Source: Phaeosaccion multiseriatum (lineage: Eukaryota; Protista; Ochrophyta, other classes). Taken from it: 64,000 bases of DNA. This document shows positions 9,601 to 61,757 of the stretch, in pieces. The notes under the pieces are model-generated. The model was not told where the DNA came from, did not search any database, and saw nothing but the letters and a program-made list of their open reading frames with translations. Within the stretch, counting starts at the first letter, position 1, and each line of letters begins with the position of its first letter. Both the position numbers and the translations under genes were made by a program. Where the stretch lies: NCBI GenBank assembly GCA_965112735.1, contig OZ218955.1, positions 2,604,001 through 2,668,000 on the forward strand, read 5' to 3'.

Positions 9601-12600
9601 CGGCCCTCATCTTGTTCACTACTGCGCCCCGTGGCGTGCCCACCTTGAGCATCTTGAAGAACCTTGCATAGTCAGGGTGGTCCTTTGCACTGATAGTCGT
9701 TGACAGGGAGGGAGGGGGCGCCTCCTCGATCGCTGCTTTCTCCGTCGGTGCTGCACCCGCGGTGCCGCCTGCTGCCATCCCAGAGCCCTCACCGCCCCTC
9801 CCTCCTCCTCCTCCTCCTCCTCCTCCTCCTCCTCCTCCTCCCCCACCGCCGCCACTCTGATTGGTCATCATCTGTATGAACTGCTCCGGCGTCAAGCCCA
9901 TCTTTCGCATGTGAGACGCGAGGGCCTGAATGTCTCCTTGGAGGGTGTTGGAAAGATCGATCTTCTTGCCGTCTCCCTCTGCCCCGCCTGCCCCCTCTCC
10001 CTCCCCTGCCCTAGCCACCTCGCCATCGGTGGAGTCTGGTTCCGGCCCCCCAAGCGCCGAACCGGGGGCTGCCAGGGTTTCCCCGAAGTCAATCTGCACG
10101 GGGCTTGCTGCTTCTGGCTTCTTCTCTGGTGACATCATCACTTCACCCGATCCCCCCGACACCCCCGCCCCTACGATGCCCACCACTGACTTGCTCCTCC
10201 CTCCTCCGCCCCGCCGCCAACCCGCTGCTGCTGCCCCCACTATTCCCATTAGGCCTCCCACGGGTCCTCCTCCTCCTCCTCCTCCTCCTCCTGCCGCTGC
10301 ACCCGCCCCTGCTGCGTTGGCTATCGATTCCTTGTCTGCCTCTGCCCTCGCTCGGCTCGCTGCTGGTGATACCCCGTCCTGCTGCTCCATGAGAGGCGCA
10401 GCAGCAAAGCCTCCGGACGTCTCGAGCTCGCGAGAGGTGCGGGTGCAGCTGAGTTCAGCACTGCCGGGGGGAAAGGGGTGAGTGAGTGAGTCAGTGAGGG
10501 AGTGGATACGTGAGTCAGTGAGGGAGTGGATACGTGAGTGAGTGGGTGGGAGAGGGAGTGAGTGAGTACGCGCGTGAATGAGAGAGTGAGTGAGCTGGGT
10601 TCAGCGCTGCTGGGGGGAAGGGGGCAACAGCCGATATCAAGCAAGTCAGAGAGGTGGTGGCAAGGAAGGAACGGCCTGCAGCAGCGTAAGTGGCGCCTTT
10701 GACTGAACTTGCACACTCATATCTCCAGGAGTAGCACTGCCACAGTGCGTCAGACAACAAGACAGAGACAGCAGACAGAGAGACGGACGGACGGAGAGAG
10801 AGTGGGGCGGATCAAACACGCACACGAACACAACACAACATGCCCACATACCCACGCACGCACCTTGAGATCGGTGAATGCGTTCCTGACGCGTTGAGGG
10901 CCTTGGTCATTGTCGCACCCAACGACTCCTGCGGAGACTTCGACCTCGAAGAAGCTCTTGGAGACCTCGACCCGGAGTCCTTCGCTTCCTTCTTCTTCTT
11001 CGCCTTGTCCGCGAGGGGTGAGTATGGCGAGTGCGGGGAGTGTGGGGAAAAGTCACGGAAGAGTCTTCCTCGGGACGGAGGGGTGGCAGCAGAGGAGGGG
11101 GAGGCTTCCGCGCCCCTCCCTCTGCTGCCATCTGCCCCAGCAGCAGCGAAGGGGCTTGGGCCCGCCCCTGTCGCCGCCTCGGGGGTGTGCCGAGGGAAGT
11201 CACGGAAAAGCACCCCCCTTGGGGAGGCCACCTTTGATGCGTCGATACGATCCGTATCTAATGCTGCTCGCGTTAGGACAGGAAGGGAGAAGAGGGAGGG
11301 AGGGAGGGATGGAGGGGGGCAGGGGTAGGTGCTAAGTCCTGCATCCAAACTGCCTTGTTACACCCAAACTGTCGCGCAAGCGGTGGCACAGTAAACAAGA
11401 CCCACCACCATTCCCCAGAGGAGAAACACCGCAGTGAAAACCCCGTCTACTCGCCGCCACCCACACCCCCCTGGGGAGGCCACCCACCTGGAGTCGTCTG
11501 CTTCTTCGCTCCACTTCGCCCTGCCACATGCCCCCTCGGGCTTACCCCAGGGCTGAGCTCCTCTGCTCCCGTGGGAAAGAAAACAGATCCTCTTCCTCCT
11601 GCCCCTGTCGAAGCTGCCGAAGACGAACGTGCGGACCCCCCCAAAGACGAGTCCCGTCCTTCTCTGACACTATCCCCGCCTCCTAACGCCGTGGCAAGGT
11701 CTGCTTCCGCCTCCTCCCTGCAGGTGGGGCAAGACCACGAAGAGAACATCTTCCGAAGATACTGCTCGTGGTGCGTCTTTTCCGCTCGAGATGTGAGCCG
11801 GAAAGGAATCCTCTTCTCGCCAACGCAAAAGGTGTGATACTGCAGTCCTCCGCAGCGCCCACTGCACGTCACCAACTGATCCTTCTGTAGGGGGTCCTCA
11901 CACTCACAAGTGGAGCTTGCGCAGCGGAAGGAAGACGAGGCACCGATGGCCTTCGAGAGGGGCCGGGAGGAAGAGGACGAGGAGGAGGAAGCGGGCGGGG
12001 GAGACGTGGCAGCAGTGGCGGCCGTCCCCGCACTGGCCGCAGGAGACACAGGAGGGGACCGGCCGCTCCTCTTTGCATGTCTGACGGAGAGACTCGGTGA
12101 CCGCTTGGGAGAGCGAGCACCACTTGATGATGGCAATGCCTCTGGTGATGCCAGGGATAGTGCCGAGGCGCCCCCACCGAAGCTCGACGCCACTCGCTGC
12201 CGCCGCCCCTTGGAGGCAGCCACGCTGTCGGTCGCCCCCCCCCCCCCCGCCAGACGTGAGGGCGGCCTTCAGGCTAGACTTGGGCAGAGCCGGGGACAGA
12301 GAGCGGACGGCTGTGGCTTCGCTGCCACTGCCGCGGCCTCCGGTCCTAGACCCCGCCCCGCCCCCGCCCCCCCAGTGATCCCTGCTGCTACTGCTGCTGC
12401 TCCCATCACCCCCTTGCTTGACAATGCCCTGTATAGAGCGGCGTTGCCGATGCCCCCCTCCGCGGCTGATGAGAAAGTCGCTGCGTCGCCCCCCCTCCAG
12501 CGGTTGCGAGGGTGAGGGTGGGGCGGACGACTGCGGCGAGCTGCTTCCACTGCCATCGGTATCCAACTCCTCGTAATCATCATCGTCGTCCTCCTCTTCC

Positions 12601-27398: not shown

Positions 27399-29724
27399 CC
27401 TGTCCGTTGCTGCCGCAGAATGCGCAAGACAAAGTCCGACGGAATGAACAACGTGTCCAAAAACTTCGGCAGTGATGACGGCGACAGGTAAGGAAGGAAA
27501 TGTGCAGGGCCTTTCATCCTGTGAGACAGTTTATGTGGATGACGACGAGGACGAGATAATCATGACGATTGATGAAGATATTAACGTTCCTTCGATGCTC
27601 CTCTCCTCCGCCCATACGCCTACAACCAACCACAGCGACTATGACGACGAGAAGGACGATCGCCTTGAAGGGTGGGTGGCTCCCGAGGCGTGCGGGGTGC
27701 ATAACTCGGAGGCTATTGCTTCCTTTGACCAGATTCAAACGGGCCAGATCCACGAAGACCTTGCCAGCGGGGCGGCCTTCACCAATGCAGATGGGTCCAT
27801 CAAGACGTCGGGCTCACGGGCGATGGATGCGTATCGCATGAAGCAGGGCGGGGCTACAGAGGTCTATGATCCCACCCGAGAGGTGAGGAAGTTGGTGATA
27901 CGAGAGAAGGAGGGAGGGAAGGAGGGAAGGAGGGAGGGAGGGAGGGAGGGAGGGAGGGAGGGAGGGAGGGAGGGAGAGATGGAGGGAGGGAGGGAGGGAG
28001 GGAGGGAGGGAGGGAGGGAGGGATGGAGGGAGGGAGGGAGGGAGGGTGGAAGGAGGGATGGACGGATGGATGGATGGACGGAGGGAAGGAAGGAAGGATG
28101 GATGAAGGGCGGAAGGAAGAAGGGAGGGAGGGAGGGGAAGGAGAGAAGGAGACTTGACTTGAACTGGATCTGTGATGAACTGAACAAAGCAACCCTTCCC
28201 CTGTCCCTCTCCCCTCACCCTCCGCCTCGTCTCACTCCTTGTCGTGTGTCCAATAAATAGGGAACGGCAATCAAGGGGCTGGACAAGGCTGCAACGATGC
28301 TCCAAAACAACAACTTTACCCCAGGAGCACCCCAGGGGGGAGGAGGGCCGGCTACAAACAGAAAGATTAAGTTTGATGATGACGAAGACGACGACGAGGA
28401 CGAGGACGAAGATGAAGATGACGAGGAGGAGGACGAGGACGATGAGGAAGAGGAGGACAGCGACGAAGGAGGCGGACAGAAGACACCTCCTCCATCATCA
28501 TCAGCACCGCGGCCCATGGGTGCTGTCGCCTCCTCGCCGAGCTTCGGCGCCCCCCCCGGGGCTGGAGCAATGGGTGGAGGTCCAATGGGCGCAATGAGAG
28601 GGGGTGTACCGCCGATGGGGGGGGGTATACCGCCAATGGGAGGGGGTATGCCGTCAATGGGTATGCCGTCAATGGGGGGTGCCGGACCGCCAATGGGGGG
28701 GGGTATGCCACCAATGGGGGGTGCTGGACCGCCCATGGGAGGGGGTATGTCACCAATGGGGGGTGCTGGACCGCCTATGGGAGGGGGTATGCCACCAATG
28801 GGGGGTGCTGGACCGCCTATGGGGGGGGGTATGCCACCAATGGGGGGTGCCGGACCGCCCATGGGAGGGGGTATGCCACCAATGGGGGGTGCCGGACCGC
28901 CCATGGGAGGGGGTATGCCACCAATGGGGGGTGCTGGACCGCCTATGGGAGGGGGTATGCCACCAATGGGGGGTGCTGGACCACCTATGGGGGGGGGTAT
29001 GCCACCAATGGGGGGTGCCGGACCGCCCATGGGAGGGGGGGGAATGGCAGCAGGGATGAGCATGCCTCCGGCGACTTCTGCTCAGCCTGTGACGTCACCA
29101 GCCGCTGGCAAGAGTGAGGAGGAGGAGGAGGAGGAGGAGGAGGAGGAAGAAGAGGAGGAGGAGGAGGAGGAGGAGGAGGAGGAGGAGGAGGGGGAGGAGA
29201 AGGAGGAGGAGGAAGGGGGGAAGGAGGATGACGAGGAGGAGGATGACGAGGAGGAGGGAGGAGGGGAGGGGGCGGCGGAGGAAGGGGAGAAAGAGGGGGG
29301 GAACAAGGAGGATGAGGGGGGAGATGAAGAGGAGGAGGAGGACGAGGAGGACGAGGAGGAGGAGGAAGATGATGATGATGATGATGAGGACGAGGACGAG
29401 GACGAGGAGGATAGGGAGGATATGGAGGAGGAAGCGGAGGGCGAGAAGGCGCAGCAGCTCCAGGAGGAGAAGGTGGTGGTGGTGGTGACCGAGACAGAGG
29501 GGGAGAAGGAGGATGAGGAGGAGGAGGAGGAGGAGGAGGACGACGACGACGAGGAGGAGGAGGAAGATGAGGCAAACGAGCAGCAGCTGCAAGAGGAGGT
29601 GGTGGTTATTGAGAAGGAGGAAAAGGAGGAGGAGGAACAGGAGGAGGAGGAGGAGGAGGAGGTGGTGGTGGTTATTGAGAAGGAGGAAAAGGAGGAGGAG
29701 GAGGAAGAGGAGGAGGAAGAGGAG

Positions 29725-29756
<32 letters not shown>

Positions 29757-32700
29757 GGAGGAGGAGGAGGAGGAAGAGGAGGAGGAAAAGGAGGAGGAGG
29801 AGGAGGAGGAGGAGGAGGAGGAGGAGGCAAAAGAGCAGCAGCTGCAAGAGGAGGTGGTGGTTATTGAGAAGGAGGAAAAGGAGGAGGAGCAAGAGGAGGA
29901 GGAAGAGGAGGAGGAGGAGGAGGAGGAGGAGGAGGAAGAGGAGGAGGAGGAGGAGAAGGAGGAGGAGGAGGCAAAAGAGCAGCAGCTGCAAGAGGAGGTG
30001 GTGGTTATTGAGAAGGAGGAGGAGGAGGAGGAGGAGGAGGAGGAGGAGGAGGAGGAGGAGAAGGAGGAGAAGGAGGCGGCGGCGGAGGAGGAGGAGGAGG
30101 AGGAGGAAGAGGAAGAGCAAGAGGCAGAGGAGAAAGAGGAGGAAGAGGAGGAGGACAACGAAGCGACGGAGGAGGTGGTGGTGATAGAGACGAAGGAGGA
30201 AGAAGACGAGGGGAAAGAGGAGGAGGAAATGAAGGAGGAGGAACAGGAGGAGGAGGAGGAGGAGGAGGGAGAGGGAGAGGAAGAGGCAGAGGAGAAAGAG
30301 GAGGAAGAGGAGGAGGACAATGAAGCGACGGAGGAGGAGGTGGTGGTGATAGAGACGAAGGAGGAAGAAGACGAGGGGCAAGAGGAGGAGGAAATGAAGG
30401 AGGAAGAGGAGGAGGAGGAGGAGGAGAAGGAGGAGGAGGAGGAGGAGGAGGAGGAGGAGGAGGAGAAAGAGGAGGAGGATGAGGAAAAGGAGGAGGTGGA
30501 GGTGGTGGCGATGGAGGAGAAGGAGGAGGAAGAGGCGGAGGGGGAGGAGGAGGGGGAGGAGGAGGAGGACGAGGAGGAGGAGAAGGAGGAGGACGAGGAG
30601 GAGGAGAAGGAGGAGGACGAGGAGGACGAGGAGGACGAGGAGGGGGGGGGGGAAGGACGGAGAGGAGAAGAAGAAGAAGGATGAGGTGGTGGTGATGGAG
30701 AAGAAGGAGGGAGAACAAGAAGGAGAGGAGGAGAAGAGGAGGAGGAGGAGGAGGAGGAGGAGGAGGAGGAGGAGGAGGAGGAGGAGGAGGAGGAGGAGAA
30801 GAACGAGGAGGAGGATGAGGAAAAGGAGGAGGTGGAGGTGGTGGCGATGGAGGAGAAGGAGGAGGAAGAGGCGGAGGGGGAGGAGGAGGGGGAGGAGGAG
30901 AAGGAGGAGGACGAGGAGGACGAGGAGGACGAGGAGGGGGGGGGAGAAGGACGGAGAGGAGAAGAAGAAGAAGGAGGAGGTGGTGGTGATGGAGAAGAAG
31001 GAGGGAGAACAAGAAGGAGAGGAGGAGAAAGAGGAGGAGGAGGAGGAGGAGGAGGAGGAGGAGGAGGACGAGGAGGAGGAGGAGGAGGATGAGGAAAAGG
31101 AGGAGGTGGAGGTGGTGGCGATGGAGGAGAAGGAGGAGGAAGAGGCGGAGGGGGAGGAGGAGGGGGAGGAGGAGGAGGAGGAGGAGGAGGACGAGGACGA
31201 GGAGGAGGAGAAGGAGGAGGACGAGGAGGAGGAGAAGGAGGAGGACGAGGAGGGGGGGGGGGAGAAGGACGGAGAGGAGAAGAAGAAGGAGGAGGTGGTG
31301 GTGATGGAGAAGAAGGAGGGAAAACAAGAACGAGAGGAGGAGAAAGAGGAGGAGGAGGAGGAGGAGGAGGAGGAGGAGGAGGAGGAGAGGGAGGAGGGAG
31401 ACGATGAGAAGGAGGAAGGGGAGGAGAAGGCGGCGGAGCAGGAGGATGTGGTAGTGACGGAGAGGAAGGAGGATGAAGAGGAGGAGGAAGAAGAAGAAGA
31501 TGATGATGATGATGATGAGGAGGAGGAGGAGATGGAGGAGGGAGACGATGAGAAGGAGAAGGAGAGGACGCAGCGAGAGCAGGCTGAGGCAGCACTCCGA
31601 GAGAGAAAGAGACTGGCAGCACAACGTGAGGAGGAGGAAAAGAAGGAGCGAGAACTGAAACTCCAAGAACAAGTTTTGGAGGAGGAGGAGCGACTGGCTA
31701 TGGCGGCAGCCGCTGCTGCCACACTCGAGGAGGAAGAGGCAGCGAAGGAGAAGCAGAAGGAAGAGGAAGAGGGGGAGGGGGAGGGGGAGGAGGAGGAGGA
31801 GAAGGAGCAGCAGGAGGAGGAAGAGGGGGAGGAGGAGGACGGTAAGGGGGAGGAGGAGGAGGAGGAGGAGGAGGAGGAGGAGGAGGAGGAGGTGGAGGAG
31901 GAGGAGAGGGAGCAGCAGGAGCAAAAAGGAGGTGTATGCGACTCCGACGGACCGGCATGGGCTCGAAAGCTGTCGAAGGCCAGTGCCAGTGCTATGGCAG
32001 GGGCACTGCAGCCTGTGGAAGCTGTAGACCAAGACGGTATCGCGTGGGTAAGGCGAGCGTCAGAGGGCATCACCTCCACCCCCCCCTCGACAGAAGAGGA
32101 GGAGGAGGAGGACAAGGGAGAGGAGCAACCAGGGGATGCTTGTGACTGTGGCGGACCGGGATGGGTTCGGAAGCTGTCGAAGGTCAGTGCCAGTGTTGCG
32201 CCAGTAGGAGTGTCGCCTGTGCAAGCCGCTGACCAGGACGGTCTCGCGTGGGTGAGGCGAGCATCAGAGGGAATCACCTCCACCCCACTCTCAACAAACC
32301 TCACGGGGGCAGCAGCAACTGAGGGTGGTGATGGAGCAGCGGTGCCAGTCTCAGAACCGAGAGTACCAGCAGCAGCATCAGAAGCAGTAGCACAGCCAGC
32401 AGAAGAGCCAGCAGAAGAGCCAGCAGGGGCAGCAGCAGAAGCAGAAGCGAAGGCCGCGACAGGACAGGAGGGGCCGGAGTGGGTGAGGCGGCTTTCGTCA
32501 ACAGTCGAGGCTGCAGAAAGCGCAGCAGGGGGGGGGCAATCGGACGGGGCGGAGTATGGTGATGATGATGCCAGTGGCAGTGGGCTCGGTTGGGTGCGGG
32601 CCCTCTCTCTGAACTTGTGGGAGGGCGCGCCAGTGGCCCAACCATCGGGGCTGAGCAGGAGAGGCGAAGAGGGCGAGGAGAAGGAGCAGGGCTCTGCGGC

Positions 32701-45385: not shown

Positions 45386-48205
45386 CTAAGTTGTTGAAAG
45401 GGCCCTCTTGGAACTGCTGCCCCCATCCCTCCCTCTCCTTGGGACCTTCATACCTGTACCGGTGGGGAGACGGGTGGTGCCTCCGCTGCTGCTGCTGCCA
45501 GTGCTGCAGGGCCTTACGCTGCCTCCGCCCCCCCCGGAGCTTGGAGTCCCCCTCGGGGTGGAAGGAGGAGTCATCATGGACTGCTGCTGTTGCTGCGGCT
45601 GTACAGACAGACGAGAGAGAGAGACCAGCACACCAAGAGTGTGAGCCACGGCACATGGGCTGAGGCAGTGACAGTGAGCGGAGTGCGTAGCTACTGCTGG
45701 GCAGTCAACAACGCTCAGTCAGTCAGTTCGAGGATTTGAGAGGGGGACAAGTCGAGTAGAAAGTCAGGCTCGCCTGCCCACCCGCCCGCCTGCCTCGCTG
45801 TCCAGCCATGAATGCCATTCGCCGATGTCAACCAAGCTCTAGAACTTACGAACTTACGAACTTACGAACTTACGTGAGCAGGATGGGGACTCTGCGTGGG
45901 GTGCTGCGGCGGGGTCACAGGCGTCGACTGCTGTATCACAGCCTGCTGCCGTCTGGCCGCAGAGGGACGCTCTCGCTCTTCGCCCCCTCCTCCTGCTCCT
46001 CCTCCTCTGCTCACAGACGCCGTCCTCGCTCCACTCGGCTTGCTGGTGCTGCCCGACCGCCCTGCTGACTTATCCAGATGCCTACCACTCGCGGGCCTCT
46101 TGCTCTGTTTCTGCAGATAGGGGAGCTGAGGGGAACGGATCCGGGCGGGTGGGGTCGACCCCGGGGAGAGAGCGAGCAGCCGAGCAGGGGTCGTCTGTGG
46201 CCTCGCAGTGCGTCCTCTGCCACCGCCGCCACCGCCGCCTGAGCCTGCTGGTGCTGCTACTCCCCTCGCCGCGGGACTCATCATTCCGCCTCCACCTTCA
46301 CCCCTACTCCCACCCCCACTTGTCGCGCTGGCAGGGCTCCAGGGGGGTACGTGACCTTGTTGCGAAGGAGAGGGAGTGGCGGCTAAAGGAGACGGAGACG
46401 TGGAGCTGAGCCGGAGGTCGACGGTCGATGCCATCCGCTGCTGCTGCTGCTGCGGCGGCGGCTGATGCTGCTGCTGGTGCCTTTGCTGCCCGCCATGCCT
46501 TCGTCCTGCAGACGTGGTCGGTCTTCGGTGGAGCTCATGCTGCTGATGCTGCTGATGCTGGTGCTGCTGCTGGTGCTGCTGCTGGTGATGGTAGGGCTGC
46601 TGCTCCTGCTGCTGCTGAGACTTGTGGTGGTGGTGGTGCTGCTGCTGCAGCTGCTCGGGCTGAGAGTGGAACGTGGCGTTGGGGTGTCCTCCGGTGGCAG
46701 CAGACGGAGTGTTGAAGAAGGCCCGTGAACGTTGCTGCTGTGCGCTGCCCCCCTCCCCTCCGGGCCCTCCTGCCCTTTCATCCCCCCCCCCGCCGCGGCT
46801 GAAGGCAGGCATACCACTCCGTCCTCTCGAAGGTTCCCGCGGTCCCCGCCCCAGGGAAGTGGATGGGCGGAGCCCACCCCCGCTGGCACCTCTTCCTCCC
46901 CCCCCCCCTCCTCCTTCTCCTCCTCTTCGTCCTCCTGCTTGTGCATCCCGACCACCCCCACCGTCGAAGTGCTGCATATGTCCCGAGCCTGATGCGCCGC
47001 TGCTCTGCTGCTGCTGCCGAAGCTGCGCCTGGGCATGGAGCACCTGTACTTGGCTTTTGAGGCTCTGACACTGGTGCTCCGACTCACTCTTCTCCCTCAG
47101 TACTTGCTGCAGCTGGGTCGTCAGGGCCTTGCTGAGAGAGGAGGGAAGGAGGGAAGGAATGGGTGTGTGTGTGGGGGGGTGGGGGGTAGTGTTTAGACAG
47201 AAGGGAGGGGGGAGAAGGTGCGGTGAAACCGTGGCCAGGGAGCAGGTGCAGTGTGGCTGAGGGCAATAGAGAGCAACAGCACATCAGTCAGTCGGATATA
47301 GAAGCAAATCAGAGGCCCCTATTCTCGAGGCGACTTACGTGGCGTTTTTCTCCTCGAGTAGGAGGCTATTGAGGTGCTGCACCTTGCCCCTCTCAGTCTC
47401 CAGCAGCTGCGGAGAGAGGTGAGGGAGGCACGGCGACAGTCCAGAGGGGAGATGACGAGAGGGGAGAGAGGAGCGAAGAGACAAAGAAGAGGAGAGCGAG
47501 CATCAGAGGCAGCACCTTGCGTTAGCAAGCCCAAGCGCGCAGTCAGCATGCCTCGAGAGAAGGGGGAGGTAAGCAGGGCGGCATTCCCCTTCCCAGCAAG
47601 AGAGGTGGCTCTGTCTCCCGCTCTACCCCCATGCGGGCCTGGGGTCCTTGCCTGCGCAGCCTGATCGGCGATGGCATTGTAGTGCCCCATCTGGAAGTCC
47701 ATAACCTCTTTCATTTGGCCCAGTAGATGGAAGGGGTCGCAAAGGTACTGGGGGGACAATGGGCGGGGAAGAGAGGAGAGAGGGGGTCACGACCATAAAG
47801 AGCGGGGAGATGTTTTCCTTTACATGTTTCCGATCGAGTTTATAGGCCTCACCATGGTGGCATCTTCAGGTGGATTCGCCATGGACGCTTCGTTAACCTC
47901 CTGACTGCAGCTCGGGCACACCTAGGAATGAGAAAGGGGGGGGGGGATACAAGATAAGGACGCGGCTTTTCCTACTTGTAGCAGAGAGAGGTAAAAGGGT
48001 TTCGAACACTCACCCCTGGCTGCCCAGACCGGCAACAAACCGCGCACACGAAGTGCTGGCAAGAGAGCAACACGCCCATGCCGTCTTGTGGCGAAGCCCT
48101 CGTGCTGAGAGAATGAAGGCAGATGGCACATCTCGGGTCGAAGCCTTCCGTCGGGGGAAGGGCAAGGGCATCAGGAGGAGGGGCCACTCCTGGTCCTGCC
48201 GCCAT
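45386..48205 (-). CDS. RNF212/Zip3/ZHP-3-like meiotic RING E3 ligase (RING + coiled coil + long disordered Ser/Gln-rich tail)
   Basis: CAIC..LLSCQHFVCAVC (48012-48205) + VCPSC (47853-47921) form a C3HC4 RING, followed by YLCDPFHLLGQMKEVMDFQMGHY (compare the RNF212 'ILEFQEKH' motif). The 3' exons and stop are uncertain. Confidence 0.7.
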
Positions 48206-48468
48206 AGCGGATAGTGTTCCTTTGGTCTGCTTCGTTCCCCCCACAGCGTCCCTAGTCACCTGCTCCTGCTGCCATAGCGGATCAAGGATGCTCGCTCCTT
48301 TCGTCCTCTCTCCCTCCTCCGTTTTTGTCTCTTTTGTCTTGAGCCTCCGGCCTCGCTCCCGCCAAAGCACTACCCGGCGTCTCCAGCTGTGAGTCTCACA
48401 GGTGGACCACCAAACACACATAGAAAATCTCCCAACACCCCCCGCCCCTCATCCGACCCTCTCCACAA
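48206..48468. promoter_or_regulatory. Putative bidirectional promoter (RING gene / dioxygenase-SET gene)
   Basis: 263-bp gap between divergent starts. Confidence 0.4.
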
Positions 48469-51400
48469 ATGCCTTCTCCTCGCCGATGGCGCCCCCCCAA
48501 GCAGGGAACGCTAGCATTACTCTCTCTTCAGACCCTGCGGGCGACTGGCTTCTTGCACCTAGCACCGCGGAGGATGACGATGCGTGAGAGCGGGCAGCAC
48601 TACCAACAGCCGCGCCTGGAGCACCATACGGCTGATAGGAGCGGAGCTGAAGGCACGCGAGGGAAGAGGAGAAGGCTCCATAGTAGCCCATCTGCGGGCG
48701 AAGTGTTAGATGAGGACGGATGGGACTGGATGGGAGAGGGCTTCCAGATGGAGGAGGTGGCAAAAACAGGAGCAGGAAAGAGCGGGAAGGACGGGCCAGG
48801 GCCAGGAACGGAGAAGGCCACAAAAAAAGTAGGGAAAAAGGGGGAGAAGAAAAAGAAGAAGAAGAGGAAGGCGCGCGCCGGGCTGCACGCACATCTCCCC
48901 ATAGTCATAGGCTTTGGTCTGTGGCCTACAGAGCTGGCCACAGCAGGAGGCATTGTGGCAGGCATAGGAGGGTACGAAGACGTCCAAATTGCGTCTGCGA
49001 GTGACTTAGAGCTGAAGGATAGGTTTGACCAGCTATTGGCGTCGTCCTCTTCACTAAAGGAGTCCCTGGCCTCCCAGACGTCAGCAGGGTCCAGGGGGGA
49101 GGAATGGGCGGCTTTATACCCTTACCGACCGCGCATAGTTCTCGTCCTTCCACCATCAGGGGAAGGGCGAGATATAGAGGCCGAAGTGGACATGGCCCAC
49201 CTGCTGGTGGCACTGGACGAATGCCGGAACACCCGCCCCCTCGTGCTCTCGACCTTGGGCCCCGAGCAGCTTGACGCCTTGGCCTCGGTGGCGGGCGGGG
49301 AGGCGCAGGCCCGAGGTCCAAGCCCAAGCACAAGCAGTACGAGCGGTACAAGCAGCACACTCAACTGGGGCATGTCTTTGGATGAGCTGTGGCAGGAGCT
49401 CTCGGCGCGCCATCTGGCCGGCAACGAGCTCATCCAGCCCCTGCAGACGCACCCCACAGAGTGGCAGCCCTCGGACGCAAGCATCGCCCTGCAGCTCGAG
49501 ATTGACGGGGCCATGGTCACCTCGGCGAACGGAGTGGACAGGTACAGTGCCGTGCTAGGCCGTGCCGTGCCGAATGAATGGACTTTAACAACGCTCCTGT
49601 CCTTCTCCTCCTTTTCCTCCTCTCTGCATCCACGAGTTGGTAACCTTTGCATTTTCCATTTCCGTCCTCTGTCATCCCATCCCTCTCTCCCCCCCTCCTC
49701 TCCCCTCCCCTCCCACCCCCAGATGGGACACGAGCTCTGTGGTGGTGCTGGACGACTTCCTCGACGCCCCACTGCAGAAGGAGCTTTTGGCACTCATCAC
49801 GGAGGAGGGATGGGATCACTCCAAGGGCCCACCTCCCTCCAAGTGGTGAGTCAGACAGGGGGGAGGCATACCAGCTAGCCAGCCAGCCAGTCAGCCAGCC
49901 ACTCACCCACCAGGGCCGGCGGCTTGTCTTCTTTGCCCTTGATTGGGCGTCTCCGTCCCAAGTTCTTTACCCTCCAATGTGTGCCTTCCTCTCCCCCACC
50001 CCTCTCACCCCCCCCCCCCCCCCCGACTCAACTTACAGGGAAAAGGCCCTGGTGGACACGGATGGGTCCCGCCCCACCTGGGGACTCACTGAGGAGGCCT
50101 CCGAAGGCCTCTGCCAGGCCGAGAAGGAGAGCCGTGCCGTGCTGGAGGTGCAGTCCCGGCTGTGCAAGCTGTACCCCGACTGCGTGGTCAGTCGCTTGCC
50201 GGAGGCGGTGTTGGGGGAGACGGTGGCCCCGCTCGTGGCCAACGCTCCGCAGGCGGGCGACAGGTCAGCAGCAGCAGCAGTAGCAGCAGCAGCAGTTGGT
50301 GATACGGCAGCAGCACACGATGCTCCCCCCATAGGAATATCCCCCAACCCCCCCACAATTGTCCTTCGTTCTATGCAGCAGATGCACACCCCACACAGCA
50401 TTTCACGACCTTTCCTTCCTTCCTTCCTTCCTTCCTTCCTTCCTTCCTTCCTTCCTTCCTTCCTTCCTTCCTTCCTTCCTTCCTTCCTTCCTTCGTTCCT
50501 TCCTTCCTTCTTTGCTTCCTTCCTTCCTTCCTTCCTTCCTTCCTTCCTTCCTTCCTTCCTTCCTTCCTTCCTTCCTTCCTTCTTTCCGCCACCCTTTCCT
50601 TTTCCTTCCGCGTGAAATGTAATGCACTGCAAGCGTAGGTTCGATTACCACATTGACGCGGACCCCATCATGGTGCCTCCCTCCCCCTGGCGGGATGCCT
50701 TCGGAGCCTACCCCAATCGTGACCCGGGCAAGCCCCTCTTCGCGACGCTCCTGCTCTATCTCATGGATGAAACCGTCGAGACAGGCAAGTGCCAAGGGGC
50801 AAGGGGACAAGTGTCGCACGTACTGCAAGCAGCAAGAGAGAGAGTGTGTGTGTGTCGCACTAGTCTGGTCGCTGATCAGTCGGTATGCCGTGTCGCGGTG
50901 TCCGGTGTCCTTTCTTCCTTCCTGCCCTTGCTGCTGCTGCTGCTGCTGCTGCTTTTGAGTCGTACGACGCCAGCACTGACAAGGCCCTGGCGGACAATAC
51001 CCCCACACTCTCCGCTCTCTTCCCCCTCCCCCCATACCCCCCCCCCCTGTGAGCAGAGTGGCCGGCGGCATGGCAGGCGGAAACCCTCTTCGTGGACTCC
51101 CCCTCGGGCACGGGTGTGTTTGTGCAGCCTCGCCCCCTGAGGGCGGTGCTCATGGACCAAGATGTGACGCATCGCATCAATCCACCGAGTGAGCTGGCAG
51201 GGAAGCGGCCCCGCTACTCCCTCGTGTGGAAGCTCATCATGCATCCCAAGCAGCAGCCTGGGCACGGCACCAGCAGCGGCAGTAGAGAAGGTGGGAGTGC
51301 GGATGAGTCTCGCTCTTCCTCTGCTCCTGCGGCCGCTGCTACTGTATCACCAACTGCTACTGTATCGCCAACTGCTACTGCTGCTGCTGCTGGTGGTGGT

Positions 51401-52265
51401 GGTGGTGCGATGTCCATTCTCCGCAAGGATCTGTGGGGTGAGGCCACCCGCTTCGGCTCTGCAAATCGTGACGCCAAACCGTGCAAGGCCCAGCGACACA
51501 GGCAGGAGGAGCAGCAGTCAAAGGGAGAGGTGGATTTGCTCAAGGAGGGACGCGTGCGTATAGGAGACGCCGGGCCCAAGGGGGAGGGCCTCTTCAGCAC
51601 AGACTTCATCGCCGAGGGGACCTCGCTCGGTGCGTGCGTGCGTGCGTGCACAGCGCAGAGCGCACCAGGCAAAGGCATGGGGGCTTGGGTTGGGTTGGGT
51701 TGGGTTGGGTTGTGGCACATTCATGAAGTGGACTATTGACCCTTCGCCCCTTGCCCCTAGCCGTTAAGGCCTACGCCTGGCCCGACCTCTCACCCTTCGG
51801 CCTGACAACCGACCCTACTCCTCCAAACCACACATGCACACATACGTAATTCTTTGGCTGATTCCTATAAGTCAGCAAAATACCCCCCTGCCCCGCCCCT
51901 GCCCGTCTCCCTCCCTACTCCTCCCTACCCCTGCCTCTGCCCAGGCAACTACAAGGGAGAGCTGCTGGACAATGTGCAGGTGGTGGAGCGATACCCGGAC
52001 TCCACTCGCACCGAGTACATCTTCGAGGTCGATCCTTACCGGAGGCTCTTTGTCGACGCATCGCAGCCGGAGCTCAGCAACTACCTACGGTATTGTAACC
52101 ACGCGTCGACCTCTCCGGGCAGGGAGGGCGGGCAGGAGGAGGCGGCGGGGGGAGTGGTCATTGCTGCCGGGGAGGCGAATGTTCGGACGGAGGTGCTGCC
52201 CGCGGCGCAGCGAATCACGTTCCGAGCGGCGCGAGACATCCTGCCAGGTAGGTAGCATGGTTGCT

Positions 52266-52309
<44 letters not shown>

Positions 52310-52559
52310 ACGTGGATGCGTAGCGTGTAGCGGGTAGTTAGAGGTCCCCCCTCCCTCTTGCCGAAATTGGGCTCACTCCCTCCCCACACATCGATGTGAT
52401 GATGCGTGAATTGGCTTTGTTCCCCCTGTCCCGGCCTTGTTGCTGACAGGAGAAGAGCTTTGCTTTGACTATGGCGAGAACTACTGGGGGGGTGACGACG
52501 ACGGAGAGGAGGGAGAGGAGGCGGAGGAGGCAGGGGAGGGAGACGGTGTTGAAGCGTGA
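48469..52559 (+). CDS. Fusion protein: putative plastid-targeting presequence, DUF3783-like domain, 2OG-Fe(II) dioxygenase, SET-domain methyltransferase
   Basis: Exons ~48469-49541, 49723-49845, 50039-50262, 50638-50784, 51057-51629, 51945-52246 and 52450-52559. Dioxygenase motifs: VVVLDDFL, YHIDAD (HxD), TLLLYL, W..AW.AETLF, VTHR (distal His), RYS. SET motifs: KGEGLF, G.Y.GEL, YIF, DA....N..RYCNHA, ARDI.PGEELCFDYG..YW. Confidence 0.8.
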
Positions 52560-54524: not shown

Positions 54525-55761
54525 TCACACGGCAGCAGGGGAGGGCTTGCACAAGGGCGTCGACACGGTCTTGCCCTCAGAGGGAACGCGCTTGCTCCTC
54601 CTCCTCCTGGTGCTGCTCAAGCTGCTGCTCCCGCTGATGCTGGCCGGGGCCTGAGAAGAGGAGGGAAAAGTCCATGCGGGACGGCCCCTGAGACAGCGAC
54701 CGTCGTCCTGCATCTCGCTGATGGTGCGATCGAGAGAGCTCGGCAAGCACTCCTCGCTCTTGGCCCTGCATGGGGGAGGGGAAGGGAGGAGACGAGAGGA
54801 GAGGGGGGGAGACCAGAGGAGAGGCAGAGGAGAGACAGAGGCAGAGGAGGGCGGAGGAATGAGGGGATAAATCATCACAGCAGGGGGGGTGCCCGAGAGA
54901 GAGAGGAGCCGCCGTAGGGTGAGGGCGCTGTTGGTGTTAGCAGTTGGGGGCTCGTGACGTCACGGAGAGTGGCCCAAGCTTACCTTAGTCTGTTGAGGTG
55001 CAAGTATGCATCGGTGCCGTATCCCTCGAGGGGCCGCAGCTTGAGAGAGCCTCCGAAGTAGCGCGCGTACACCCGGGAGAGTGGCAGCCCCATACCCAGC
55101 CCCGCAAAGGCGTATCTCGCCTTCTCCGCCACCTCCTCAGCAGACGCCCCTCCATGTCCCTCTTTATGACCGTTCTGACTGTCTTGAGGCCCAGACTCGC
55201 CACCACTGCTGCTGCTCCTGCCAAACTGGTCCATCCCGAGCCCCGGTCCCAGCAAAGGGCTCCGTCCGAGCCCGACTCCGAGTTCGAGCCCCTGCCCCGC
55301 GTGGGCGCAGTCCTCCAGCGGCAGCCCCCCCAGGGGAGGAGGACTCACAGTTGCCGTGGAGGGGGAGGTGGAGTACATGTACGACCACGCCTTGTGCAGG
55401 TCGGAGCGCTTGATGCCCCCCCCTTCGTCGGCCACTTTGATGGTCACGTCTTCCCTGCCCTGCACCACCACTACTTTGATAGGGGGTAGGGCCGTGGCGG
55501 AGACTCCCTCCTGCTGTGTCGCCCCCTCCTCCTCCTGCTGCTGCTGCTGCTGCTGGTTGTGGTGCTGAGGCTGGTGGTGCTTTTTCACTGTGGCTATGCA
55601 GCTGTTCTTGAGCAGCTCGCACAGAATATAGTACAGGTGGGTGGGCACGGCTGTGAAGCTCAGATTTGGCACGCCGTAGATTTGGATCTGCTCGGGACAC
55701 GCACACACACACGCAAACAAATACACGCCGTTAGAGTAGGGGTACATCGGCGCTGCATCGC

Positions 55762-55838
<77 letters not shown>

Positions 55839-57660
55839 ACAAGAGGGCGTGGTATCTCGAGGTGCCTCGCATGAGAGAAGAGTCAGGAGAGCCATAGATG
55901 GCACTTAAGGGTGTAATAAAAGAAGAGTCAGGAGAGGGTACAGACCCGAACAGTGCCAAACTTCCAATCCACGCCGCCCCCCGGCCCTCTCCCTTGCTCA
56001 CACGTAGTTTCTTAGGATGATTCCTGTAAGTGAAAAAAACCGCCCGCTCACTCCTCTTCCTGTAAGTCAAGAAACTGCCCGCTCATTCACCCCCTCCTCA
56101 CTAACCTCTGGAGCGGTGCCCAGGTGAAGGCGCGAGAGCCTCTCTACATCCTTCGCCGCCCTTCCTGCGATCTCCACGGGCGAGCAGTTGCTGGCGATGA
56201 GGCCGGCGTAGCCAGGGCGCTTCTCCTTGGAGGCGATGTAGTGCTTAACCAGGAAGCGCATACTGTGAGGTTGGGTACGGTGAGGTGGATTGGGTTGGGT
56301 TGGGGTGGGTTGGGGTGTTCTTCCCCTCTCTCATGTCCGTTCTTTATCATCATCTGATCAGGCAAGTGCAAGTGCAAGTGCAAGTGCAAGTGCATGCCGT
56401 GCGGTGCTTCTCCCTCCTCCCTCCTCCCTCCTCCCTCCTCCCTCCTCCCTCCCTCCTCCCTCCTCCCTCCTCCCTCCTCCCTCCTCCCTCCTCCCTCCTC
56501 CCTCCTCCTTCTCGCTCTCCATTCTCCATTCTCGCTTCTCCCTTCTCCCGTCTTGTCTCTCTTGTCCGTTCTCCTTATCACACACTTGTCGCACCTGATC
56601 CTGGATGTGAAGAAGTGGTCGAGGATGTGGTCCAAACGATGCACATCGATCTGACCTGCCCCGCTTCTTGCCCCTTTTGCCCCCCCCAGATGCGCCTCTT
56701 CCCGCAGCGTGTGCAGGGCCTTGCTGAGCGCGCTGGGCACCACCTTGTTGTCCAGCAGCAGCGAGGCGAGGAAGGAGGAGAATTGTGTCTCCTCTGTGGG
56801 CGTTTGGGGGACGGGATAGGAGGCCAGCTTGGAAACCATCTCGGCGTACCTGTAGAAGGTGATTATTGTTACATTCAGAGTGGTTGCATAGGGATTGAAG
56901 AAGAATTGGGCACAGTACCCACAAGAGAGGAGAGGAGAAGAGAGTTAGGTCATCAGGGGGGGGAGGCGGTACGCGAAGATGCACCCCCCTTAATCAGTGG
57001 GGGGCGGGGAGCGACGAGGGTCAATCCACACCGCACCGTATACAACCCCTCTCCCATGCCCCCCCCCCCCACATGCCCAATCATGTCTCCACTGAACGGA
57101 ATCACTCACCAGGACGCTACCAGCAGCACCGGCTCCTTCTCAGACAGGCCGTAGGGAAGCTCCAGCAGCTCCACCACCGCCTTCGCGAAGCGGACGGAAA
57201 GCTCTTGGTGCAGGAACTGCGCCTGCTGCACCTGCTGCTGCGGCGTGCGGCTCGCGGAGCTGAGCGAGTACAAGTCTCTTAGACTCAAGGGGGTGCTTTT
57301 CTTGGAGGCAAGCTCGACTAACAGCCGCTCGTCCAGCCCCGCCAAGCCCTGGAGCGGCGCCTGCTGAGGGAGCGGTATGCTCGCTAGGTGCTCACTACTG
57401 CTCTCAGGCTCGGCGAACTTTCCCCACACTGGGAACGCGCCGCTACTGGGGGCCGGGTTGGAAGAGTGCCCCCGCCTTTGGTGAGAGCTTGCTGCTGCCG
57501 GGGCTTTGGAAGCTGCACTGCCCGCCCCTCCTCTTTCGCCTTTCCCACCACTGCTCCTGCCCTTGTGTGCCTGCCTCTGCTGCCCTTGCGTTGCTGCCCA
57601 TGGCGCCAAACTTTGAGAGCGTGGGCGCTTCAACCCTTGAAGACGCCGCACCGCCTGCAT
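54525..57660 (-). CDS. PDK: Mitochondrial pyruvate dehydrogenase kinase / BCKD kinase family (GHKL kinase)
   Basis: TPLSLRDL..QFLHQELSVRFA..LPYGLS; LDHFFTSRISMRFL; HLYYILCELLKNS (N-box); DVTIKVADEGGGI (G1); YMYST; AGLGMGLPLSRVYARYFGGSLKL..LEGYGTDAYLHL (G2/G3). Confidence 0.92.
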
Positions 57661-59365: not shown

Positions 59366-59642
59366 CGTTGAGCGCTTTCCCCTTTCCCCTTCCCACCGAT
59401 GGCTGGTTTTGCGCCCGCGACATTACTCTGCGTCACGAAAACGCCACATCAAGAGCCCGACCCGGAGAATATGCCTGCCCTTGGTTCTGATCTCCAAGGG
59501 CTGTCGATATATTAGGGATATATTCAGCTGGATATATTAACCCTGGGGGCGAGGAAGCAAGCAAGCTTGACTGTTGGCTCTCCGACTCTCACAGCTGGCC
59601 CACCCCTTTTCAAATCCTTTCTTCCCTTACTCCTACATCTCA
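59366..59642. promoter_or_regulatory. Putative bidirectional promoter with a triple GATATATT motif (~59506-59538)
   Basis: 277-bp gap between divergent intronless genes; three GATATATT copies. Confidence 0.4.
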
Positions 59643-61757
59643 ATGCCATCGCTTGAGGAGACGGGTCGGTTTGTGGAGGAGTGGTATGAGGGAACCAAGG
59701 AGTGGGAAGCGTCGGGCGGGGCCAGCAGCACGGAGCACCTCCTGCTACTTCTCAAAACCGTGTTATCCTGTGTGTCTTTGAAGCACTTCAAAGAGGAGGG
59801 CTACACTCCTCTCCATGCCCTGGCTGACATGGACAAGAGCAAGAAGACACGCTGCATGGAGGAGAAGGGCATGCATATGCGAGGGAGCATCAAGCTGCTG
59901 CAGAGTTGCGGGCTTGATATTGACACCAAGAGTTGGACCGACACGTCCTTTCCTGATCGGACACCTCTCCACCAAGCTGCAGACAGGGGTCACTTCGACT
60001 TGGTGAAGGGACTCGTGGGAGCCGGTGCAGATGTCAATGTGTTGTGTGACAATAGGTGGACCGCATTGAGCTTTGCTGCTGGAGGTGACCACCCCCTGAT
60101 TTTGAGGTACTTGATGAGGCATGGCGCCGAAGTGGAGGGCAGCGAGGCCCTACACGAGGCAGCGTATAGTGGGAATCCGGAGAGTGTGGAAGCGTTGCTG
60201 AAGGCTGGAGGGAAGCCGAATGAGACAGATGGAGATGGTCACACGGCAGTTCAGACGTGCTGCATAGGTGGTGGTGAGAAGAAGGGAGGACGGGCGGAGG
60301 CCTTGTCTCTGCTGCTGAAGGGCGGCGCCGACGTGCAAGTTAAGGATGGGGAAGATGGTAACCTCCTGCACCTCGCCGCAGAGAACGGCAATGCGCAGTG
60401 CTTTCCTCTTCTGGTCGAGAGAGGGCTGCAGCTTGATGCTAGAGATGTCTGCATGTCCACACCGCTTCATCGTGCATGCTACAACGGAAGATTGGCTTGT
60501 GTGAAGGAGCTCATGCGCCGTGGCGCCTCTCTCGACCTGGTGGATGACTTGGGCCGTACCCCCCTCTTCGATGCGGTCGTGCGGGGGCATGCGAAGATCG
60601 TGTCTGAGCTGATACAAGCTGGTGCCTCAGTCAAGGTGAAGAACACGACTGCCATAACACCTCTACACCTGGCCGCAGCTCTGGGCAACATAGAGCTGTC
60701 TTATCTGCTTGTGGAGGCTGAGGCTGAGATCGATGCTCGGACCAACACCGCCCAAAGTCCCTTGATGGCCTGCATGCATCCTGATGAACAAGCCGTGTCA
60801 CGCATGCTTGAGTTTCACGATGTTGGGCCAGGCAGCCAGGAGGCCCGCGAGAAGGTGGCTGCATTCCTGCTGAAGATGGGCGCTGCGGTCAATGGGGAGG
60901 TCATCGCTTTGGCAGGAGAGAAGGGCTTCGGTGGTGTCATTGCCTCATTCCTTAGCAAAGCCATGGAGGAGAAGAATGCTCTCTCTGACAGGTTCCAGAC
61001 GGTAGCTGAGCACTATTCCATCCTGGGCGGCAGCGGCGAAGGAGACACGCGCAGCCAAGAGGTGGTGGATGTGCGACTGGTGAACAAAGTGAGTGGGGCG
61101 AAGGGGGAGAAGCTGTACGCTTTGAGCATCCCGCTGGTGGAGCAGCTGATGGAGAAGGTCAGAGAGAGAAGAGGGGAGACAGGAGGAGAGGAAGGGACGA
61201 GGAGCGCTGGCGAGGCCTCTTCTGCAGCAGGTATTCTCCCCACCTTGCTGGACCCTGCCAAGTATGGGTACAAGAGCGGCAAGAAAGGAAAGGGGAAGGA
61301 CAAGAAGAAGGAGATTGAGCTGGAGTATGACGGAGTGAACTTCACGGAGGAGGGCTTCGAGGCCGTGGTGAAGTTCGTCACCACGGGCAGCGTGGAGGAG
61401 CTGCTGACGAGGAGGCCTGGATCGGCAGGGAAGAGGAAGCGAGGCACGAGCAGCAGTGGCAGCGGAGAAGGGAACGAGAGCAGCAGTGGTGCGGAGGGCG
61501 GCAGCAGCAGCAGCAGCAGCAGTGGTGGTGGTAGGGTGAGGAAAGAGCATGGAAAGCTGTTTGACGAGATCAGAGCGAAGCAGGCCCTGCAGGCCGCGGA
61601 GTTCTTCTGCTTGGAGGGCCTGTCGAGGGAGGTGAAGGCGTTGATGGGCGAGTACGGCTTTGCACTGCAGGAGGAGAAGGGTGGAAAAGGGTCTGATGGC
61701 GAAGGTGCTGATGAGGGAGGAGAGCCTTCGAAGAAGAGGGCGAGGGGGAATCCATGA
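59643..61757 (+). CDS. Intronless ankyrin-repeat protein (~10 repeats) with a degenerate C-terminal BTB/POZ domain
   Basis: TPLH.A, TAL..A, EALHEAA, NLLHLAA, TPLHRAC, TPLFDAV and TPLHLAA repeats. The C-terminal DVRLV..., IELEYDGVNFTEEGFEAVVKFVTTGSV and ALQAAEFFCLEGL fit the BTB pattern. Confidence 0.88.
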   Translation: MPSLEETGRFVEEWYEGTKEWEASGGASSTEHLLLLLKTVLSCVSLKHFKEEGYTPLHALADMDKSKKTRCMEEKGMHMRGSIKLLQSCGLDIDTKSWTDTSFPDRTPLHQAADRGHFDLVKGLVGAGADVNVLCDNRWTALSFAAGGDHPLILRYLMRHGAEVEGSEALHEAAYSGNPESVEALLKAGGKPNETDGDGHTAVQTCCIGGGEKKGGRAEALSLLLKGGADVQVKDGEDGNLLHLAAENGNAQCFPLLVERGLQLDARDVCMSTPLHRACYNGRLACVKELMRRGASLDLVDDLGRTPLFDAVVRGHAKIVSELIQAGASVKVKNTTAITPLHLAAALGNIELSYLLVEAEAEIDARTNTAQSPLMACMHPDEQAVSRMLEFHDVGPGSQEAREKVAAFLLKMGAAVNGEVIALAGEKGFGGVIASFLSKAMEEKNALSDRFQTVAEHYSILGGSGEGDTRSQEVVDVRLVNKVSGAKGEKLYALSIPLVEQLMEKVRERRGETGGEEGTRSAGEASSAAGILPTLLDPAKYGYKSGKKGKGKDKKKEIELEYDGVNFTEEGFEAVVKFVTTGSVEELLTRRPGSAGKRKRGTSSSGSGEGNESSSGAEGGSSSSSSSGGGRVRKEHGKLFDEIRAKQALQAAEFFCLEGLSREVKALMGEYGFALQEEKGGKGSDGEGADEGGEPSKKRARGNP

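Follow-up and report, generated by a model that had tools for sequence, protein, structure and literature searches.

We analyzed a 64,000-nt stretch of the genome of the ochrophyte Phaeosaccion multiseriatum (contig OZ218955.1, positions 2,604,001 to 2,668,000 of the forward strand; hereafter the window), and in particular a gene located at positions 48469-52559 on its forward strand. The DNA around this gene is GC-rich (~61%), intron-containing and eukaryotic. Sequence comparisons confirm the predicted model of a real, intron-split algal gene that fuses a prolyl-hydroxylase-like oxygenase to a SET lysine methyltransferase. From the N- to the C-terminus, the predicted protein presents a putative presequence, an alpha/beta domain, an oxygenase domain with the complete set of iron- and 2-oxoglutarate (2OG)-binding residues, a tail motif, a linker and the SET domain. 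The same fusion was found in two relatives: a contig of Phaeothamnion confervicola (CAXNAC020004549.1; L002) and a eukaryotic contig from a JGI metagenome (L001), which carries the protein P0003.

Gene model and domain organization

The gene model comprises seven exons and, with the three forward frames read, translates into 850 residues with a sole, terminal stop. Five of its introns are GT-AG and one is GC-AG, with lengths of 181-375 nt, and an in-frame stop lies 5' of the gene (48421-48423). Exon 1 (48469..49541; aa 1-357) is an open reading frame (ORF) ending at the donor cag/GTACAG; it encodes the putative presequence, an acidic and Lys-rich low-complexity spacer, the N-terminal alpha/beta domain (aa ~138-300) and the first part of the hairpin at the N-terminus of the oxygenase. 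The N-terminal part of the oxygenase continues on exon 2 (49723..49845; WDTSSVVVLDDFLD ... WDHSKGPPPSK), which was supported by phmmer and is colinear with L002 and P0003. Exon 3 (50039..50263), defined from the model and its alignment to relatives, holds the middle of the oxygenase and ends with the residues ...VANAPQAGD. The HxD iron ligands (HIDAD, 50649-50663) are located on exon 4, which spans 50639..50784 with a GC donor or 50639..50774 with a GT donor. Exon 6 (51945..52247) encodes the SET core (YKGEL, RYCNHA) with an insert at 52106-52171, and exon 7 (52450..52559) the C-terminal SET motif GEELCFDYG, an acidic tail and the stop codon (52557-52559).

The two catalytic domains meet on exon 5 (51057..51629), which encodes the oxygenase C-terminus, the tail motif, the linker and the first SET strand with its GxG motif. 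The sole open frame of this exon starts at 51059, the other two frames containing three and five stops. It holds the distal iron His (DVTHRI, 51161-51178), the 2OG-binding RYSLVWK (51212-51232) and the SET motif GPKGEGLF (51572-51595). The first-pass annotation of this DNA had placed the C-terminal oxygenase motifs and the N-terminal SET motif on this exon with no stop, and had described the catalytic motifs as intact. Both statements were borne out: H478-x-D480, H561, R575-x-S577, G698-x-G700, N765-H766 and ELCFDY822 are all present, at invariant or near-invariant columns of an alignment of 44 family members. Indeed, the columns of the iron triad HxD...H (H478, D480, H561) are invariant across these 44 members, as are Y, S and K of the 2OG-carboxylate set (R575-Y-S577, K581), and its R is nearly so. 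The SET motifs retained are G698-E-G700, Y716-K-G-E, RYxNH with N765-H766, and E817-L-C-F-D-Y822, including the catalytic Tyr.

The spliced model aligns without a break to full-length relatives over aa ~300-595 (P0001, E 2.6e-95; P0016, E 2e-87). These alignments to many relatives run across exons 1-5 and so validate splice junctions one to four, while the SET domains of both fused relatives are colinear with exons 6 and 7. Against the Phaeothamnion ORF, BLASTP returned a single alignment covering both domains (aa 268-841; 41% identity; E 1.7e-136), a match that is far beyond chance as judged from the sequences. The SET region of the window protein also matched P0003 (E 4.2e-21). Pfam was run on the window exons separately, and each domain is split over several of them. 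SET reached 22.3 bits on exon 6 alone (E 1.8e-4; cut-off of 22.4 bits), and 2OG-FeII_Oxy gave no match on the separately scanned exons, where this domain is split. Because these exon-wise results fall below the cut-offs, the domain assignments in the window rest on homology to relatives that pass them.

Intron 4 can be read in two ways: as a GC-AG intron with a typical GCAAGT donor (50785-51056), or as a GT-AG intron (50775-51058) that is also in frame and yields 846 aa. The GT-AG version appears to fit the relatives slightly better, with one extra residue left against them, versus five for the GC-AG version. This choice makes no difference to the finding of the fusion. Several introns contain microsatellites: (TTCC)x44 in intron 3 (50412-50587), which also opens with a CAG run (50266-50295), and (TG)x19 in intron 6 (52268-52305). 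The TTCC array generates long spurious ORFs on both strands.

The N-terminal alpha/beta domain is common to one subfamily of the oxygenase family and aligns with 29 relatives; its predicted topology is of the beta-alpha-beta type. It had initially been described as DUF3783-like, a resemblance that we did not recover. No Pfam match was obtained even at E ≤ 10 for the window domain and the N-terminal regions of nine relatives, DUF3783 (PF12646) included, and DUF3783 was absent from the 44 rows of the alignment (two of which are cut-outs without this domain). The best Foldseek matches of the modeled window domain were tautomerase-like proteins with non-significant E values (0.06-0.3). The N-terminal 140 residues of the window protein have no detectable relatives. 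The exon-1 ORF (484 aa) gave no match among 5.8 billion proteins, in a search whose length window would exclude a protein of 850 aa.

Past the catalytic core of the oxygenase, the tail motif ILRKDLWGEATRFGSA (ILRxxxWGxxTRFGSA; 51416-51463, + strand) is conserved across the family. Since unfused members also share it, part of the apparent linker belongs to the oxygenase family. Between the catalytic domains, an 18-nt tandem repeat of 2.5 copies (51336-51380, + strand) encodes TVSPTA-TVSPTA, and this low-complexity linker differs in length among the three fused proteins. Upstream of the gene, a divergent ORF with a RING-finger match (47972-48421, - strand; zf-RING_5, E 2.5e-4) starts ~50-270 bp from the ATG of the fusion. 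Its proximity allows hardly any space for an overlooked exon upstream and suggests that the two genes share a short promoter region.

Fused relatives and history of the family

The nearest relative of the window gene was found in the ochrophyte Phaeothamnion. Its contig contains a single uninterrupted ORF of 719 residues (630-2789) that holds the N-terminal domain, the oxygenase, the linker and SET (Pfam: SET, 8.7e-20; 2OG-FeII_Oxy_3, 6.2e-5). The public annotation nevertheless describes a partial oxygenase of 315 aa and a separate SET protein of 146 aa. Because at least this one public annotation splits the gene in two, the architecture is under-counted in databases. The metagenomic protein P0003 likewise lies on a single uninterrupted ORF (L001:4347-6260, open from 4152), with Pfam matches to SET (1.3e-23) and 2OG-FeII_Oxy_3 (1.2e-5). 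The Pfam SET scores of the two fused relatives are 71.5 and 83.7 bits. The three fused proteins share pairwise identities of only 34-46%, which implies that the fusion is old and conserved and is no accident of assembly. On this sequence evidence, the architecture is ancient, and at least three divergent taxa have retained it.

Exon 5 alone was compared with 1.84 billion representative proteins by phmmer and gave 372 matches, all through its first ~70 residues, which correspond to the oxygenase C-terminus (best match: a Phaeothamnion confervicola protein, 7.8e-25). A strict SET-focused search (P0003 residues 425-610; E ≤ 1e-8; 583 candidates scored) recovered only P0003 itself. Scanning JGI metagenomes with SET motifs yielded 23 SET loci, none with an adjacent oxygenase, several of these contigs being too short to tell. 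The fusion is thus rare: P0003 was the only case among 150 representatives, and none was found among 24 plus 23 further matches. When bacterial and archaeal genomes were scanned with the two oxygenase signature motifs, a narrow test, no relatives emerged.

Phylogenies of the oxygenase domain place the three fused proteins side by side, basally in a clade with strong support whose other members include a cryptophyte protein and MMETSP proteins. Above the fused proteins, the clade contains an unfused crown (support 99/93). Constraining the three fused proteins to monophyly cost 5 log-likelihood units and was not rejected (approximately unbiased test; P = 0.211). The simplest scenario compatible with these trees would be a single fusion event, followed by the loss of SET in the crown or with the fused group sister to the crown. 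The unfused members of the subfamily (P0016 and P0171 from MMETSP, P0054 from Baffinella, P0106 from Pedinophyceae and P0152 from Monoraphidium) share the N-terminal domain, the oxygenase and the tail motif with the fusion, and some of them present organellar-looking N-termini as well. In contrast to the fusion, they end shortly past the tail motif, without SET.

A branch of the wider oxygenase family that lacks the N-terminal domain includes choanoflagellate proteins (P0008, and P0203 from the cluster of P0010; Salpingoeca urceolata and Acanthoeca spectabilis), and we rejected the idea that the family is confined to photosynthetic lineages on account of these members. The subfamily bearing the N-terminal domain has so far been found exclusively under algal names. 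Among the green-algal members of the family, the Tetrabaena protein P0036 is fused to ankyrin repeats.

Predicted function and alternative explanations

We consider it reasonably probable, from the sequence features described here, that this nuclear algal gene encodes a plastid-imported, bifunctional enzyme in which a hydroxylase is tethered to a lysine methyltransferase acting on the same client. The protein would enter the plastid through the signal-peptide-plus-Phe route of red-type complex plastids, where both catalytic domains would act on one or more shared protein substrates. With O2 and 2OG, the oxygenase would hydroxylate a side chain, most likely that of proline; with S-adenosylmethionine, the SET domain would methylate a lysine; and the tether would hold both activities on one client.

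The first element of this model is the N-terminus. Proteins imported into red-type complex plastids are known to carry a signal-like N-terminus that precedes a small residue and then Phe or Trp. In the window protein, the motif RATG/FLHLAP (48538..48567, + strand; the slash marks the putative cleavage site) follows a short hydrophobic stretch at aa 13-23, with Phe directly after the small residue (ATG/F, aa 25-28). Counterparts of this motif are found in relatives. In the Phaeothamnion ORF, the initial stretch is clearly hydrophobic and leads into SRS/F (SRS/FVQ). In the metagenomic ORF, an upstream in-frame Met gives MRSRSCSRFRSACLLLLLGQQSDS/FLAP, with the motif QSDS/FLAP, and the unfused MMETSP relative P0171 begins with ...ALVLEATG/FSPAP (motif EATG/FSPAP). 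A crude scan of complete proteins for hydropathy ≥ 1.9 ahead of a small residue plus F or W picked out 15 of the 24 complete members of the clade versus 4 of the 87 proteins elsewhere, at least three of these four being false positives inside a domain. The N-terminal pattern thus lends genuine, albeit indirect, support to a predicted plastid targeting of the surrounding clade.

Several observations weigh against the model. The hydrophobic stretch of the window protein is weak, with a best 9-residue Kyte-Doolittle mean of 1.76, compared with 2.79 in Phaeothamnion and 2.46 in the metagenomic protein. Next come an acidic stretch and a lysine run (KKGEKKKKKKRK; 48835..48870, + strand; aa 123-134), equally well interpretable as a nuclear signal; neither occurs in the two fused relatives. 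The plastid-type presequence proposed by the first-pass annotation therefore stands as regards the ATG/F motif, its counterparts in both fused relatives and the pattern across the clade, and is weakened by the hydrophobic core and the lysine run of the window protein itself. Only three fused examples were found in all and most members of the clade lack SET. The presence of the wider oxygenase family in non-photosynthetic choanoflagellates indicates that the family overall is not plastid-specific. In addition, the window SET carries a Gly/Ala/Glu-rich insert of 21-22 residues (52106-52171) directly after N765-H766, which may impair it. Finally, the SET part of the AlphaFold 2 model of P0003 has a predicted local distance difference test (pLDDT) score below 50, because few SET sequences enter the alignment, and the SET fold is accordingly deduced from sequence only.

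The features of the N-terminus could also be explained by a nuclear or cytosolic enzyme of chromatin type, that is, a histone or nuclear-protein lysine methyltransferase joined to a protein hydroxylase, in which case the plastid motif of the window protein would be coincidental. The weak hydrophobic N-terminus and the strong lysine run, which resembles a nuclear localization signal, agree with such an enzyme. So does the similarity of the SET profile to canonical lysine methyltransferases of the PDB (EHMT2, MLL, SETD2, LegAS4 and KMT5A; ~1e-11 to 1e-6), since the best solved relatives EHMT2, MLL and SETD2 are histone methyltransferases. This likeness is, however, generic: the SET domain is minimal and canonical by its sequence, and presents ~30-38% identity to many subfamilies. 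We found no SET zinc clusters and no reader domains, chromatin readers included, in the fusion protein, and no Pfam match to the substrate-binding domain of Rubisco-LSMT in the window pieces or the fused relatives. Moreover, both fused relatives and most complete members of the clade have clear signal-peptide-plus-F/W N-termini, and the relatives do not contain the lysine run. A chromatin-type role, nuclear or cytosolic, appears unlikely.

With a comparably small probability, the fusion could be real and the window SET catalytically dead, its role being limited to binding a lysine or a substrate and thereby recruiting the hydroxylase. The insert lies within the segment NHxCxPN that forms the SET knot and splits it between NHA and (E)AN, and the GxG motif of the window reads G-E-G in place of the G-R-G of the relatives. 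Reading the insert as a missed intron was rejected, as it contains no GT...AG pair of plausible length compared with the 181-375 nt of the introns of the gene. On the other hand, the window SET has kept GxG, YxGE, RYxNH and ELxFDY, catalytic Tyr included, and loop inserts rich in Gly, Ala and Glu occur commonly in this GC-rich gene. In the relatives, SET is uninterrupted and scores 71-84 bits.

A third explanation concerns the chemistry of the oxygenase, which the first-pass annotation had proposed as a possible demethylase that strips the methyl groups added by SET. All 44 aligned family members match PF13640 at E ≤ 0.1 (best, 1e-10), with scores of 24-37 bits for the relatives around a cut-off of 27 bits. 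PF13640 and PF13661 are the only families that the oxygenase matches, and no member matches JmjC or AlkB. The claim that the oxygenase stands outside the JmjC context was therefore upheld. Searching the PDB with the family profile retrieved the prolyl 4-hydroxylase of Phytophthora capsici (6iuq; 3.6e-5) and, weakly, PHD2 (E 1.3-2.3; not significant). The AlphaFold 2 model of P0003, a relative of the window protein, has pLDDT > 90 over residues 30-445, and its Foldseek matches are P3H1, PHD2 and bacterial, viral and oomycete prolyl 4-hydroxylases (P4Hs), with a probability of 1.00 and E ~1e-6; identity to any solved structure is 12-18%. By sequence, the oxygenase belongs to the prolyl-hydroxylase-like group and is neither JmjC nor AlkB. 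The characterized members of this group are hydroxylases. By analogy, and given this membership and the lack of JmjC or AlkB signal, the oxygenase is more likely a protein hydroxylase than a demethylase, and the hydroxylated residue would probably be a proline. Although demethylases are known among the 2OG oxygenases of other families (JmjC, AlkB), and JmjC-SET fusions exist (Iyer et al. 2010, PMC2938197), the Pfam and structural matches make a writer/eraser pair very unlikely.

Finally, the notion that two separate genes, or an artefact of assembly or annotation, were misread as one is close to refuted: it draws on the two partial products annotated on the Phaeothamnion contig, but both relatives hold the two domains in one uninterrupted ORF, the window domains share the sole open frame of exon 5, and three independent assemblies agree.

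Other features were observed elsewhere in the window. Strand asymmetry is extreme in the region 28000-32000 (GC skew, 0.53-0.81; AT skew, 0.48-0.78), where ORFs of 800-1270 aa overlap on both strands, and the region is probably a purine-rich low-complexity or repeat block. An ORF of 1155 aa (6923-10390, - strand) matched the profile of CCDC53, a WASH complex subunit, at 12 separate places, each time over the last ~50 profile positions (summed E 2.3e-141), and looks like a tandem-repeat protein, not a CCDC53 orthologue. Neighboring ORFs encode ankyrin repeats (59574-61757, + strand), HATPase_c (54980-55840, - strand) and a PHD finger (678-3566, - strand).

Significance and comparison with known systems

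Both enzyme families are well known, and the fusion represents a new architecture built from known kinds of enzymes. What it adds is their pairing, conserved outside the JmjC and chromatin setting and behind a plastid-type presequence. It predicts that, in algae of the red-plastid lineage, plastid proteins undergo hydroxylation and lysine methylation in a coordinated manner, and it names candidate genes for plastid protein modifications, including the marks of diatom Rubisco. In diatoms, the large subunit RbcL carries 4-hydroxyproline at positions 48 and 155, hydroxylysine at 150 and 198, beta-hydroxyleucine at 174 and trimethyl-lysine at 346 (PMC9833100). The RbcL of Chlamydomonas has hydroxyproline at the equivalent of position 155, in common with diatoms (PMC9833100). 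No enzymes responsible for these marks are named in that review or in the further literature searched. If the fused enzyme and the subfamily bearing the N-terminal domain were the missing machinery for these modifications, a plastid prolyl-hydroxylase-like oxygenase tethered to a lysine methyltransferase would cover both chemistries on one client. Rubisco as a substrate is an attractive guess, and we regard it as doubtful, because nothing links the window gene to Rubisco and because the wider oxygenase family has choanoflagellate members.

The closest architectures that we found are the JmjC-SET fusions, in which members of the KDM4/JMJD2 clade are fused to SET in some lineages (Iyer et al. 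2010, PMC2938197). No description of a prolyl-hydroxylase-like oxygenase joined to SET was found in the literature searched, where JmjC-SET fusions alone appeared; within this scope, the architecture is undescribed, as had been surmised from the sequence. Like the window protein, JmjC-SET fusions combine a 2OG oxygenase and a SET methyltransferase in one polypeptide. The window oxygenase differs in that it is not JmjC, its context is not chromatin and its expected chemistry is hydroxylation, not demethylation.

Compared with canonical SET methyltransferases (PF00856), especially those of the minimal SETD8/KMT5A type without pre-SET and post-SET zinc clusters, the fusion shares the motifs GxG, YxGE, (R)YxNH and ELxFDY. 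It differs from canonical SET enzymes by the absence of flanking Cys-rich, reader and Rubisco-LSMT domains, by the attached oxygenase and presequence and, in the window, by the insert after NH. With prolyl-hydroxylase-like oxygenases (PHD2/EGLN1, P3H1, algal, viral and bacterial P4Hs, and 6iuq), it shares the double-stranded beta-helix, as predicted in the AlphaFold 2 model of P0003, the HxD...H triad and the RxS of the last strand. Relative to these known prolyl hydroxylases, the family described here possesses its own N-terminal hairpin (WDHxxGPPxxKWE), an N-terminal alpha/beta domain and a C-terminal tail motif (R-x-E-W-G...GSA), and it is here fused to a SET domain.

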